A stretch of 64,000 nt of DNA from Octopus bimaculoides (taxonomy: Eukaryota), in assembly GCF_001194135.2 (NCBI RefSeq), contig NC_068998.1, forward strand, positions 51,041,887 through 51,105,886. The letters run 5' to 3'. Position numbers and translations under genes: made by a program. Below, piece by piece: positions 12,101-28,692 of the stretch (position 1 is the first letter of the stretch; each line of letters starts with the position of its first letter). The notes under the pieces were generated by a model. That model was not told the origin of the DNA and ran no database searches. It worked only from the letters and a program-made list of their open reading frames with translations.

Positions 12101-15100
12101 GAGGAACAACGACAGTACTACAAAGGTATGTACCTTTCTCTGCATATCATAATTTGTATGTAGCTTATTTTACTTCTTGCGTTTTATCATATATATATAT
12201 CTATCTATATATGTATGTATATATAAGTGTGTGTGTGTGTTTGTGTGTGTGTCTGTATGTCTGTGTGTGTCTGTGTATACACGTGTGCAGTGTCGTATGG
12301 ATATTTATATTTATACATATGTATATATATATTTATATATATATATACATATATATGTGCATATATAAATACGTAGATATTTATACATATAACTTATGTG
12401 TTCTCACGTATGTATGTATGAATGTATGTATGTATATATGTATGTATGTATGTATGTATATGTATATATATATATNNNNNNNNNNNNNNNNNNNNNNNNN
12501 NNNNNNNNNNNNNNNNNNNNNNNNNNNNNNNNNNNNNNNNNNNNNNNNNNNNNNNNNNNNNNNNNNNNNNNNNNNNNNNNNNNNNNNNNNNNNNNNNNNN
12601 NNNNNNNNNNNNNNNNNNNNNNNNNNNNNNNNNNNNNNNNNNNNNNNNNNNNNNNNNNNNNNNNNNNNNNNNNNNNNNNNNNNNNNNNNNNNNNNNNNNN
12701 NNNNNNNNNNNNNNNNNNNNNNNNNNNNNNNNNNNNNNNNNNNNNNNNNNNNNNNNNNNNNNNNNNNNNNNNNNNNNNNNNNNNNNNNNNNNNNNNNNNN
12801 NNNNNNNNNNNNNNNNNNNNNNNNNNNNNNNNNNNNNNNNNNNNNNNNNNNNNNNNNNNNNNNNNNNNNNNNNNNNNNNNNNNNNNNNNNNNNNNNNNNN
12901 NNNNNNNNNNNNNNNNNNNNNNNNNNNNNNNNNNNNNNNNNNNNNNNNNNNNNNNNNNNNNNNNNNNNNNNNNNNNNNNNNNNNNNNNNNNNNNNNNNNN
13001 NNNNNNNNNNNNNNNNNNNNNNNNNNNNNNNNNNNNNNNNNNNNNNNNNNNNNNNNNNNNNNNNNNNNNNNNNNNTATATATATATATATATATATATAT
13101 ATATATATATATTTCTATGCATGTATATGTATATGTCTGAATAACTAAACATCACGAACAATCTGAATATAATAGATTTTTTAGATGTTTTCTTCATCAT
13201 ATTCAATTAGACATTATAATTTCCAGTCGATAATGATAACCTCGTTTCTAACAAAATATACATTTTTTAAAACTTTACATCTATTTTATAATATTTTTTC
13301 AATGTGACATTAATATTGATACTAAAATTATTTAATTTTCAGCATTAAATGAAATATTTCAGGTTCACTCATGTGAGCCAAAATTACTTTGCCCTGAAAC
13401 CTTGCAATATTACACAGGTAGTCGTGCAGACAACTGTCGGTACATAATATTTTATTAACTTTTTTACTATTTATACCTCTTCTAATAATTATATTTGATT
13501 TTAATTTCCATAAACAATGATACCATCAAACGCTAATCATAAATATTTTTCTCTGACAGTGGAACTCGACTAAAAATTGTTTGGTAGTGTGTCTTCAAAA
13601 CTAAATCCACCAGATTAATTTCAGTGAGATATTAAAGGCGGAATCGATAAAAGACATACTAGTTAAGCAGAGTGATTGCTCTAATCGGTTCTATCCCGCC
13701 ACTTTAGCCAACATTTTTAATTAATATTTCGGTGACAAATGTCACAATAAGATTATATCGGAGAAAGTATTGTAATAAGGCTATCGCTGTACATATAATG
13801 TCCTCCACTGTCATGCTCCATAATTATTTAATACAACGTTAATTCCCAGCATAGGTATAAATCAAATAATTTAAAGCAGTAGTCCTTAAACTTTTCCCCT
13901 CAGGCCCACATTTGCTACGATCACACACTGAAATTGAAAATGTCGATGAGAAATAAAATATTTACAAAATCTGGCAGAAAATAGAAAATATGTTTAATGA
14001 TTACAATGCTATTGATGTCTTACTATCAGCTTGTCTAACTCAACTTTCAAATCTTGGTTCAATTTCAGGCGCAAATCTTCTCTTTTTCATTTTGTAAAAC
14101 ATTTCACTTATTTGTCAGCATATCATTTACAGCAGAAAGTCCTGCCTCAACCAGCCAGATGGTAGGAAACCATACTACGAATAGAACAGCTTTTCAAAGG
14201 GCAGGGATAGAATGATTTTACTTCCAGCCATTCCATCAATCCTTCCTTTTCAAGTCTCCCCATCAATGGATTGCTTTCTGACAGCTAAACACCCTCAAAC
14301 GGAGCCCATCTTCCTTGAGAAAAAGTACTTCATTTTCAGGCTGTAATGAGTACAACTCGATGCTGGTGCGACCTTCTATTGGTCCATCTGTCTCATCCTT
14401 TGTTTTCTGTTGAGGGATCTTTGGGAAGGCCATGATTATCTGCTTTGTTTACATCCGACTGTAATTATGTAGGCACCAAACGTAAATTAATGAAAGCATG
14501 ATACATATTTCTATGCCATATAAAGTAGCACGTGACAGCTGGATGCGTTATATTTATTACCAACTTTATTAAGTCTTCTTTTCTAAAATATTATTTACTG
14601 CTTTGCATTTACCTTTCAGATTCTATTACGAATATGAATTATGTGCTGTAAAAAAACGTTGGATTTGTGCTCAAAAGTATCTTGAAGAATATAAGACCTA
14701 TAACTGCGCTCGTAAGACATTTTGAGTATAACACTGTGGAAGGCGAATTTTGGCCTTGGGTGGCGACTGCTATTTCGTATTTGCTTACTCTTAGAATGTT
14801 TGAAAATGGGCTAATATTTCCTTCAAACTTTGCTTTTCTTAAGATATTTATTCAAACCCCAAAGAATCTGTCTCAAGACATGGCGATCTCCAACTACTCA
14901 TGTTCATGTAACAAGTTACCCTGCTCGAGTCGCGACGTCAAAAGCTCGGTTTTGGAATTTGGCAGACAATGACCTCTCAACAGGTCACTGAGGCCTTCTT
15001 GGTTGGGTGTAATATGGGTTTATCGCTTCAGCTGCAACTCTGTAATCTGGATTAAAGACTTCATCCTCTTTTATATGTGCTGCTCTCTTCTGAAGATTGC

Positions 15101-25800: not shown

Positions 25801-28692
25801 CCATTATCGTATTTATCGAACAATGGTTCAAATTTAGATTTCTTAGCACTTTTATAAAGAATTTTTTGGGGTTTGCCAAGCAAGGAAGAGGAAAGAAGAA
25901 AAAAAAAGGTATCATCACTCATATCGATACCCAGGTCCCTCACTGATTTAGGCTCTGGGATTGAAATTCCTTGTGGACCAGTGTACCCTGTAAGTTTCAT
26001 ATTCAGTTTTGGACGCTGGTAGCGCAGGGCTTGGATTTTTCAGCATTAAACTGCATATTATTATCCTCAGCCCATCTGTAAATTGAGTCCAACTCCTGCT
26101 GCAGAATCGCCGCCTTACTGCCTAAATATATTAGAAGATACGTAAATTTCTTTCTTCATCATATCCAATTCCACATTATAATTTCTAATCGACAATGATA
26201 AATAAAATATGCCTGCTTTCTTTTACATTCTCTTTCATATGTTTTCAATGTGGCAATAATATTGATACTAAATTATTTAATTCAGTGTTGTATCCAAATT
26301 TGAAGGTCAGAGATTGTTCGGCCAGAACAATTTGCCCTCACATCGTGAAATATAACAAAGGTACTGGTGCTGCAAACTGTCGGTACATAATATTTCATTT
26401 ATCTTATAGCTAATTTTATTAATGTAATGATTATGTTCTAATTTTAATTCTAATTTTATTAATCTAATAATTATGTTTAATTCTAATTTTTATAAAGATC
26501 CATAGAATTCAATGTTAATTACAAATATTTTTTCACATCGGTACTCAAAGAAAGATTGCTTGGTGGTGTGACTGAAACTAAATACTCTAGAATTTTTCAG
26601 TGATACATAAGTATAAAAATGAGTAACAATGTAAACCACAATAAGATTTGTTTGCAAACCGGACAAACAAGGTCGATGATCTGCGTGTAATGTCATCCTA
26701 TGTCATTCCCGAAGATTACCAAATACACAGATAACTTCCAGCATAAACATAAATCAATTTATTTAAAGTATATTTTGAACGCAAAATATTTCTAAAATTG
26801 AAGGATAGTAGTTTTAAGTGAAGTGTTTCGTCCTTGAGTAAAGTACTTCATTTGCAGGCTTCAATGAGTACAAATCGATACTGATGCAATCTACACTTCC
26901 TCCAGCTGTCTTGTCTTTGATTTTTACCTTGAGGGATCGTTGGGAAGGGAGTGATTGTCGGCCTTGTTTTTTTTTTTACATCCGATTGCAATTATGTAGG
27001 CACCAAAAATAATTCATGAAAACATGATACATATTTCCATGCCATATATGCTAGCAAGTGACAGCCGATGGATGTATTGTACTTATTACTAGCTATATTA
27101 AATCTTCTCTCCTAGAACATAATCCACTGATTTGTACTTGCATTTCAGATTTTATTACGAATATGAATTATGTGCTGCCAAAACAAACTGGTATTGTGTT
27201 GATGAGTACCTTTATGAATATGTGAACTATAACTGCGGTCGTAAGATATAAATATATAATCTTATTATCTGATTCCATGCATCGACTAAATCCTAAGCGA
27301 TAATTACTTCTGTCAATTTAAGATAAGAGTTTATACCCAACTGGCATTAACTTTATATTTAGATGACATTAAGTACCTACATAAAAATTTCTGAACGAAA
27401 CCGATAGACGCCGCTGTTTCGACGGTGTCGATTCATCACAGCTGGCTGGACATTTAACAAAGTTTGGCGACAATACATTTAGACATTGGAGACAAATATA
27501 ATATTCAGACACACATATGCACATGCAGATCTTAAATACGCATAATCAGAAATATATACTTACAGATAGGAAGCTCGAAAGAAGGGTTGGGATAGAGACG
27601 TTACAATTAACAATTGAACACGACTGATGTAAACACCTTCCCACACGCCATGAATAAAGAAAAATATTCTCACGCACCCACATGCACCCACATGCACTCA
27701 CACACACACACACACACATGTGAGCATATCTTTACAGATAGAGAGATAGAACGAAAGAAAGATTAAAACGTCGGTTGTCAAATTAGTTAGTGTCGAATTA
27801 ACGATGGCAAATGCGTCGCACCATAACGGCTGTTCCAAAATCTGTGATACTCATAAAGTCTACAACATAATATCCACAAAATACCCACAAAATAGATATT
27901 AAAATATCTGTCTAGTATTAACATCTTATCGTTCTATTCATTCTCATTATGTACAGACCTAAATTCATTATATGAATGGTTATATTTAAGTACCAATACA
28001 GTAATGGAATATTTTAATTCGGCTTAATCAACACCGGAATTGAATTGGTAATTAATTTCATCGCTGAACACGACAAAGGTGGTAGAATGGAAACTGGAAA
28101 AGTGACTCCGAAAAATTTTCAGAGTCAACTTCTTCATCTTTATCAAGCGAGAACATTAGATTGAAATACTTTGTGAAGACTCCTAGACGCTTGCATGACC
28201 CGTGTCAGTCTCACAACATGACACCTTGGATATGTACCCTTTACTGTAGCTCCGTATCAAATTATGTGTTGTGAATCAATTTGATGGACGGAAACTGTAT
28301 GTGTATGTGCGTGCGCGTGAATGCATGAGCGTATCTACATATGTATATGCGTATGAGCGTGCGTGTCTTGTGCATCTCCTTGAACGCCTTGAAAATCAGT
28401 CTCGTTTTGTTTATGTCTCTTTAAGGAAAGGAGACTGATGGAATATTTACCAGACTTTGAAAAATAATAAATAGTGGAGTCTATTTCTTGGACTAAAGTT
28501 TCAAGATAATGCTGAAGCACGACTCCGATCCAACACCAGAACCAAAATAACTTTGTTATTCCACAATAAACACCATATTTCATATTTATTCCAGCTACAG
28601 CCCCACCACCACTATCCATGAATGGTGCTTTGGCCTGTTTTACATCTCCACACAGTATATTACCAGTTCTTATTCTACTGATATTGGTGTGA
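19801..28692 (+). CDS. G3: 139 aa secreted, predicted GPI-anchored six-Cys protein with 7 coding exons
   Basis: Exons 19801-19837, 21076-21114, 24230-24250, 25332-25367, 26286-26382, 27149-27240 and 28595-28692; 420 nt in frame: [142 protein letters not shown]-track entry 26195..26413 contains the 97-nt exon. Confidence 0.88.
19960..20300 (+). mobile_element. RTE/BovB-like LINE post-RT fragment in G3 intron 1
   Basis: [28 protein letters not shown]...[12 protein letters not shown] resembles the YLGS...EIxxRIxKAxxAFG motif. Confidence 0.65.
22268..23200. mobile_element. Internally deleted Tc1/mariner remnant (minus strand, about 22600-23200) plus an inverted partial copy (+, 22268-22448)
   Basis: [19 protein letters not shown] (WPPRSPDL-type) segment is fused to [19 protein letters not shown]; present in both orientations. 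Confidence 0.7.
25850..26120 (-). mobile_element. CR1-like LINE RT fragment
   Basis: [21 protein letters not shown]...[15 protein letters not shown] (RT domains 6-7). Confidence 0.7.

Follow-up and report, generated by a model that had tools for sequence, protein, structure and literature searches.

Can one exon of a gene change faster than the introns on either side of it, and what would drive it to do so? The question is raised by a 64,000-nucleotide stretch of the Octopus bimaculoides genome (the window; position 1 is its first letter), which lies at ~51.04-51.11 Mb of chromosome CM046618.1 (assembly GCA_001194135.2) and is identical to the DNA fetched for this locus across the overlap. 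Comparing the window with itself revealed four colinear units on the plus strand at a spacing of ~12.5 kb, the genes G1-G4, each with a six-cysteine domain split over an exon of 97 nt (exon 1) and an exon of 92 nt (exon 2). We found that exon 1 has diverged about twice as far as the homologous intron DNA and that exon 2 has not, and we regard diversifying selection, acting on the half-domain that exon 1 encodes, as the probable, if far from certain, explanation.

The gene models were established from the RefSeq annotation, which covers all four copies and titles each of them "uncharacterized protein" (G1 is LOC106874739, G3 is LOC128249878 and G4 is LOC128249877; for G2, the annotated product has 137 aa). 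RefSeq proteins P0001-P0003 and P0007-P0009 were mapped exon by exon onto the window. This placed the signal-peptide exons 2-6.5 kb upstream of the Cys-domain exons (Table 1), the one of G1 falling shortly before the window starts; searching immediately 5' of each Cys-domain exon for signal peptides had given only open reading frames (ORFs) in microsatellites. We also considered that G1-G4 might be four repeats of one large gene, which was rejected because each has its own signal-peptide exon, stop codon and RefSeq model. Exon 1 of G2 and G3 is bordered by an acceptor ending in CAG and a donor beginning with GTAC, and the two Cys-domain exons together supply 63 codons between phase-1 introns. 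The frames of the Cys-domain exons and of the last exon are intact in 4/4 copies. The fixed cysteine framework described in a first-pass annotation of the window was borne out: the six cysteines (C-x5-CP-x13-C-x8-C-x6-C-x13-C) and the proline after Cys 2 are invariant across G1-G4. The signal peptide is similar among copies as well, as over a 15-residue alignment from the initial Met of G3 the G3 sequence is 73% identical to that of G2 and 67% identical to that of G4. The stretch from the signal exon to the Cys domain includes symmetric micro-exons (phase 1-1; 21, 36 and 39 nt; three in Table 1 and another at ~35776-35817), and one micro-exon is alternatively included among the RefSeq isoforms.

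The first-pass annotation had claimed, from a hand count of G2 against G3, that exon 1 diverges faster than its own flanking intron. Recounting returned the same values for the 60/97 identical nucleotides in a gapless alignment, the three cysteines among ten shared residues, the eleven codons with one first- or second-position change and the third base kept, the synonymous change in 3/10 shared residues, and the 44/50 identical positions of a 50-nt upstream intron block (13190-13239 versus 26152-26201). The one figure to be amended was an amino acid identity of 10/32: ten residues are indeed shared, out of 31 whole codons, or 11/32 if the split terminal Arg is included. More importantly, the difference holds beyond the hand-picked block, as the flanking introns of G2 and G3 are 73-79% identical over 610 aligned columns. 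In MAFFT alignments, identity is 79% in the 180 nt upstream of exon 1, 62% in exon 1, 73% in the 200 nt downstream of it, 79% in the 300 nt upstream of exon 2 and 78% in exon 2. Over a larger span, non-coding identity between these two genes is 78.6% (1,891 columns in nine colinear blocks across ~8 kb; range 74-88%). Counted as differences, 119/558 intron positions and 37/97 exon 1 positions have changed (one-sided Fisher p = 4e-4). Exon 1 is the least similar homologous segment in 6/6 pairs of G1-G4; the 100 nt downstream of G2 exon 2 score lower, but are not homologous to the other copies. In an early tblastx comparison, the conserved blocks were matched in each of the three frames alike, indicating that these blocks are non-coding DNA.

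Since the result depends on how intron identity is measured, the yardstick (MAFFT global-pair alignment) was calibrated by simulation: real introns were evolved in silico to known degrees of divergence, indels included. The identity measured on them followed the true identity without bias down to 0.5, with a floor of ~0.45. We then extended the comparison to all four copies, using the 558 intron columns that are gap-free in G1-G4. The mean pairwise difference was 0.448 for exon 1, 0.267 for the intron and 0.268 for exon 2, and the corresponding composition-corrected distances were 0.711, 0.337 and 0.337. This corresponds to an exon 1/intron distance ratio of 2.14 (bootstrap 95% confidence interval (CI) 1.60-2.91; 0/2,000 replicates at or below 1), compared with 1.01 for exon 2/intron (CI 0.73-1.34). 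Maximum-likelihood (ML) tree lengths under the HKY model on the four-taxon tree were 1.41 for exon 1, 0.69 for the intron and 0.69 for exon 2, so that the homologous intron has diverged about half as far as exon 1. The intron and exon 1 share the same best topology, ((G1,G4),(G2,G3)). Nonsynonymous divergence (dN) of exon 1 was 1.70-2.58 times the intron distance across the six pairs, with 6/6 CIs excluding 1 (2.20 for G2-G3, CI 1.29-3.48).

The change of rate is sharp. Mean pairwise identity is 0.79 over the last 30 intron nucleotides, falls to 0.43 in the first 24 exon nucleotides, rises through 0.53 and 0.62 and reaches 0.71 past the donor, so that the step matches the splice acceptor within a few bases. 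Most codon columns of exon 1 hold three or four different residues, and the three cysteines and the proline after Cys 2 do not vary. The kind of substitution changes as well: exon 1 has a transition/transversion ratio (kappa) of 1.1-1.3, against 3.0 in the intron and 2.5-2.7 in exon 2 (likelihood ratio test p = 6e-4), and the transversion excess is confined to the fast exon of the four genes (Table 1). Low kappa fits selection for amino acid change, because transversions more often alter the residue; it is also compatible with a transversion-prone mutator.

To what extent these replacements exceed the synonymous changes is a separate matter. The first-pass annotation proposed a ratio of nonsynonymous to synonymous rates (dN/dS, omega) at or above 1 in exon 1. 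The NG86 estimate for G2-G3 is 1.30 and ML estimates for the four copies are 1.3-1.7, so values well below 1 were not what we found; neither is omega significantly above 1, and NG86 goes down to 0.62 among the pairs. To make use of the intron, a codon model (MG94 x HKY, written for this analysis) was fitted on the intron tree. Fixing the branch lengths to the intron tree amounts to giving synonymous sites the rate of the intron; on that assumption, omega is 2.6 (2dlnL = 42.8, p = 6e-11). With both omega and a rate factor (rho) left free, rho is 1.6-1.8, which does not amount to a significant rise (p = 0.18). None of the tests sets exon 2 apart from neutrality; its NG86 omega is 0.44-1.38.

Several points weigh against reading the excess as selection. 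Raising every rate 2.3-fold while holding omega at 1 describes the data as well as an omega of 2.6 does (lnL -428.09 versus -427.86); once both parameters are free, omega comes to 1.3-1.7, which does not depart significantly from 1 (p = 0.13-0.5); NG86 omega spreads over 0.62-1.30 across the six pairs; and the G1 branch shows a raised apparent proportion of synonymous differences (pS, 0.56-0.62). The sample, four paralogues of 31 codons each, is too small to tell "more replacements" from "more of everything", and the introns may not be strictly neutral. A look-up by exact protein, meant to find copies in transcripts or other assemblies, returned only the NCBI genome record, or nothing, and no transcript-derived contigs carrying these proteins. 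Finally, the 36-nt micro-exon of G2 was not located and is probably hidden in the assembly gap at 12476-13075, so that the full G2 reading frame is unconfirmable from the window.

The strongest of the alternatives is a mutational one, in which transversion-biased hypermutation restricted to exon 1 would lift synonymous and nonsynonymous rates about twofold while purifying selection kept only the cysteines. Such a process would account for the good fit of omega = 1 with rho of 2.2-2.3, for the rho of 1.6-1.8 obtained with both parameters free, for the drop of kappa to 1.1-1.3 and for the raised pS in pairs that contain G1, and a mutator mechanism has reportedly been proposed for the mature regions of conopeptides. 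It is harder to reconcile with a rate step that falls within a few bases of the splice acceptor, and with exon 2, which belongs to the same transcript, has a similar GC content and shows no excess. Moreover, the rise in rho lacks significance, NG86-type synonymous counts are inflated where many codons differ at two or three positions, and we know of no exon-restricted hypermutation mechanism in cephalopods. We consider this alternative unlikely, if weighty enough to stand as the main rival: the diversifying selection named by the first-pass annotation is the best explanation of the data, and an omega above 1 leans on the intron yardstick.

Exon 1 might instead be older rather than faster, if gene conversion or unequal crossing-over had homogenised the introns and exon 2 while exon 1 escaped. 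Tandem arrays with 70-80% identical non-coding DNA are good substrates for conversion, and the equal tree lengths of exon 2 and the introns are what such a history would leave. Yet the same topology is best for intron and exon 1, the tracts would need to end at the acceptor and near the donor in every copy, and the nine blocks across ~8 kb are uniform, with no other old island. An older exon evolving neutrally would also keep kappa at ~3 instead of the observed ~1.2, which argues against this history, and escape of an exon alone would itself imply selection against homogenisation; we judge it quite unlikely. As for the copies simply decaying under relaxed constraint, or intron identity being inflated by alignment optimisation and choice of blocks, this would agree with omega near 1 in both exons, with the 52-77% identity that shuffled AT-rich introns reach when a global alignment scores gaps permissively or leaves end gaps free (alignments of this kind were dropped as a yardstick), and with the 59% identity of a naive global alignment of the whole G2-G3 intron. 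The last value is a product of forcing non-homologous stretches into register, among them a G2-specific insertion of ~430 nt. An exon in neutral decay could not outpace the introns, however, and exon 1 changes 2.1-fold faster than they do; the identity measure is unbiased in simulation; and 4/4 copies, all of them annotated by RefSeq, have intact frames and splice sites and the full set of six cysteines. Decay or artefact is thus effectively excluded, as neutral decay cannot outrun introns and the yardstick was validated.

We favour diversifying selection because replacements run at about twice the intron yardstick, the excess begins at the exon boundary, the partner exon is unaffected, and the scaffold, signal peptide, tail and splice sites are kept. 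G1-G4 are four tandem duplicates of an octopus-lineage gene. Under this reading, replacements would have gathered after duplication in the half encoded by exon 1 at about twice the neutral (intron) rate, with no loss of the cysteines, of the proline that follows Cys 2, or of the signal peptide, tail and splice sites. Positive diversifying selection would then act on a ligand-contacting face, made of helix 1 and the loop and displayed on a fixed disulfide scaffold, and the outcome may be a small repertoire of surface recognition proteins. A bolder version, which we hold to be very unlikely, has G1-G4 as an octopus-specific, glycosylphosphatidylinositol (GPI)-anchored recognition repertoire (immune, self/non-self or chemotactile) on a so far undescribed helical domain that is stapled by disulfides and perhaps very remotely derived from the RGM N-domain, its variable half being diversified by exon-targeted, transversion-biased mutation plus selection. 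If it were true, it would be a molluscan case of targeted diversification of a receptor exon.

What would the variable half look like on the protein? AlphaFold2 models the domain as an all-helical bundle, with a mean pLDDT (predicted local distance difference test) of 82.6 for the G1 domain (five aligned sequences) and 92.8 for one repeat of the related protein P0006 (13 aligned sequences), and DSSP assigns 4-5 helical segments to these models. The domain of ~60 residues would consist of three or four helices, tied together by three disulfides whose pairing we infer. Cys 1-3 lie in the part encoded by the 97-nt exon, along with the first helix and the helix-loop region; Cys 4-6 lie in the part encoded by the 92-nt exon, with the conserved core helix (FYYEYELC) and the final helix. 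In the full-length proteins (129-175 aa) the domain is followed by a ~30-residue stalk and a tail, in which small residues and a polar spacer precede 11-15 hydrophobic residues that end the protein (in G3, N-G-A, then LACFTSPHS, then the hydrophobic stretch). Judging by this pattern, the products of G1-G4 are probably GPI-anchored. Overall, they are probably small secreted or membrane-anchored surface proteins with a signal peptide and a charged linker made from one to three micro-exons. The first-pass annotation had named conotoxins and defensins as parallels; the protein itself is neither and instead carries a six-Cys domain that is predicted to be helical and seems specific to octopuses.

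Sequence searches place this domain in a small family. Together with the G1-G4 array, at least six further family loci lie in or beside the window, in keeping with tandem duplication: G5-G8 (Table 1) and two loci just upstream of the window (fetched locus L001, 997-1095 and 4614-8816). A profile search of 1.84 billion representative proteins gave six matches, five of them from O. bimaculoides (G1, G3, G4, G6 and LOC128248155) and the sixth a repeat protein, P0005, which appears to be spurious. LOC128248155, on another chromosome, encodes P0006, an uncharacterised secreted protein of 540 aa in which the six-Cys domain is repeated eight times in tandem. P0006 differs from G1-G4 in being multi-repeat and in having no hydrophobic tail; P0012, annotated in O. 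vulgaris, is a fragment of its orthologue. The family seems to be restricted to octopuses. A motif, CP-x2-W-x2-[YF]P...NPD-x2-YC-x-RL, is common to G5-G8, the two upstream loci and P0006 and is absent from G1-G4, which have lost it. Between G6 and G7, protein identity is 45% in exon 1 and 34% in exon 2, so exon 1 is not the more diverged exon outside G1-G4, and the acceleration seems specific to the G1-G4 clade.

Pfam gave no family above threshold for the 62-aa domains or the full proteins. A word-index homologue search returned nothing or the query alone for A2 and P0008, and for A5 added one O. vulgaris fragment. Foldseek gave no significant match in the PDB for the G1 model or the P0006-repeat model, and phmmer of P0006 against the PDB gave no match. 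A literature search on five LOC identifiers returned no paper, and a keyword search nothing relevant. CBM14 chitin-binding, C-type lectin, SUEL lectin and LDLa domains were considered as candidates and rejected, as their cysteine spacing does not fit once exon 2 is joined.

Table 1. Positions, in window coordinates, of the exons, aligned flanks, assembly gaps and repeat copies discussed in the text.
Feature	Position	Strand	Remarks
G1 Cys-domain exon 1	457-553	+	most diverged copy; protein P0003
G1 Cys-domain exon 2	1559-1650	+	
G2 signal-peptide exon	9150-9186	+	encodes MEYFQCWYLVIV; conserved with G3 and G4
Gap	12476-13075		cuts G2 upstream intron 267 nt before exon 1
G2 intron flank upstream of exon 1	13163-13342	+	79% identical to G3 over 161 aligned columns; holds the 50-nt block 13190-13239
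G2 Cys-domain exon 1	13343-13439	+	97 nt; intron phase 1 in, phase 2 out; encodes LNEIFQVHSCEPKLLCPETLQYYTGSRADNC(R)
G2 intron flank upstream of exon 2	14320-14619	+	79% identical to G3; neutral yardstick
G2 Cys-domain exon 2	14620-14711	+	92 nt; FYYEYELC core, Cys 4-6
G2 last exon	15991-16085	+	Pro-rich stalk, hydrophobic tail SILPILILPILV, stop; frame intact; resembles GPI signal
Gap	18589-18598		intergenic, between G2 stop (16085) and G3 signal exon (19792)
G3 signal-peptide exon	19792-19837	+	from RefSeq protein mapping
G3 optional 39-nt exon	~21076-21114	+	
Gaps	21248-21375, 23314-24133		inside G3 introns
G3 21-nt micro-exon	24230-24250	+	KSELRR; 96 nt downstream of gap 23314-24133; read against P0002
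G3 36-nt micro-exon	25332-25367	+	
G3 Cys-domain exon 1	26286-26382	+	97 nt; matches RefSeq proteins P0002 and P0008
G3 Cys-domain exon 2	27149-27240	+	92 nt
G3 last exon	28595-28692	+	Pro-rich stalk, tail, stop codon
G4 Cys-domain exon 1	36822-36918	+	proteins P0001 and P0007
G4 Cys-domain exon 2	37665-37756	+	
G5	signal exon 41234-41282, exon 1 43031-43124, exon 2 44184-44269	+	more distant paralogue; CPESWIRFP motif in exon 1
G6 (LOC106874740)	52345-47567; Cys exon 1 50294-50387	-	CPHVWAKYPRLNPDKNYC
G7	exon 1 ~54570-54659, exon 2 ~55259-55345, last exon ~56317-56400	+	approximate bounds
G8	Cys exon 1 ~62531-62611	-	approximate bounds
~150-nt repeat copies	3441-3606, 3677-3822, 18172-18330 (-), 45882-46020 (-), 46494-46603 (-), 60969-61124		

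The window as a whole is AT-rich (~32% GC) and contains 14 runs of N. No assembly gap falls within any compared stretch; those at 18589-18598, 21248-21375 and 23314-24133 lie outside the exons and the aligned flanks and so have no bearing on the finding. (TG)n, (TA)n or (TATG)n microsatellites flank several gaps (for example 12153-12475 and 13076-13115, 18560-18640 and 5983-6110) and are probably their cause. An ORF of 93 codons on the minus strand (15467-15745), with a Cys/His zinc-finger-like pattern, lies inside a G2-specific insertion in the intron after Cys-domain exon 2 and looks like transposon debris; another, on the plus strand (45911-46228), resembles by eye only the C-terminal part of a mariner/Tc1-type transposase. 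An interspersed repeat of ~150 nt, possibly a short interspersed nuclear element (SINE), occurs in both orientations in copies that are 75-85% identical, two of them adjoining inside G1. There is also a 320-nt direct repeat (53242-53561 versus 58399-58711; 89% identity), which adjoins a gap at 57742-58395, and an inverted repeat of ~200 nt in a G3 intron (22267-22449 versus 22925-22722; 84% identity).

Lineage-specific genes without known function are many in cephalopod genomes, and the cluster adds to them a defined family with a six-Cys helical domain and phase 1-1 exons. The domain occurs in two forms, single with a probable anchor and as the eight-repeat secreted protein. As one exon evolves at twice the neutral rate and its partner does not, a contrast of unusual clarity, helix 1 and the loop are the likely functional surface, which makes G1-G4 candidates for octopus immunity, gamete recognition or surface recognition. 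The phenomenon itself, exons that outpace introns in tandem genes with a cysteine scaffold, is well known; the gene family and the domain are undescribed.

Among known folds, the closest resemblance we found is to the N-domain of the RGM proteins, a three-helix bundle with three disulfides (PMC7354924) at the head of GPI-anchored proteins (RGMb: PMC11488336). A profile of 13 domain copies, searched against all PDB sequences, placed the RGMB, RGMA and RGMC N-domains in the top five (E 0.12-0.37), and Pfam RGM_N (PF06535) was matched by 3/13 domain copies (best E = 6.6e-4), none of them from G1-G4. Scores remain low: P0006 reaches 10.4 bits against RGM_N, below the gathering score of 24.2; hhalign against RGMB gives a probability of 13% (with an RGMB sequence that was only partly verified against the PDB matches); and Foldseek against the PDB at E <= 10 returned no RGM chain for either model. 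The two domains share a length of ~60-70 residues, six cysteines in the same order with an identical Cys3-x8-Cys4 and a similar Cys4-x6-8-Cys5 spacing, the core D-x-x-[FY]-C-x-x-L-x-x-Y-x-x-C-x6-8-C, a predicted all-helical structure and a GPI-signal-like tail. They differ in the Cys1-2, Cys2-3 and Cys5-6 spacings, and the octopus proteins have no vWD/GDPH region, the domain leading directly to the stalk and tail. The ligand contact of RGM is formed by the alpha2-alpha3 linker and alpha3, whereas the variable part of the octopus domain is helix 1 and the loop. We therefore describe the link as a weak likeness of motif, a resemblance that may or may not be distant kinship, and not as membership.

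In overall design, G1-G4 also resemble the Ly6/uPAR proteins, which are small, carry a signal peptide, a single disulfide-rich domain and a GPI-signal-like C-terminus, lie in tandem clusters and frequently evolve fast. That fold is a β-structured three-finger domain with 8-10 cysteines, whereas the octopus domain is predicted to be helical, has six cysteines and no Pfam match.

In their pattern of evolution, G1-G4 are closest to secreted toxins and gamete proteins. Accelerated evolution has reportedly been described in the phospholipase A2 (PLA2) genes of crotaline venoms, in conotoxins and in abalone lysin. As in these systems, the exon for the mature region outpaces the introns, dN/dS is estimated at ~1 or above, an invariant cysteine framework goes with a conserved signal peptide, and the genes form a tandem array; as in conopeptides, transversions are in excess and synonymous change also seems to be raised. 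The octopus genes depart from them in three respects: the predicted fold is a helical bundle and not an inhibitor cystine knot, PLA2 or lysin fold; the acceleration covers one exon, that is, half of the domain; and the proteins, unlike released toxins and gamete proteins, have a GPI-signal-like tail and are probably held at the cell surface. With its exons and flanking introns side by side, the cluster offers a compact test case for the question of selection versus hypermutation that the conotoxins have raised.

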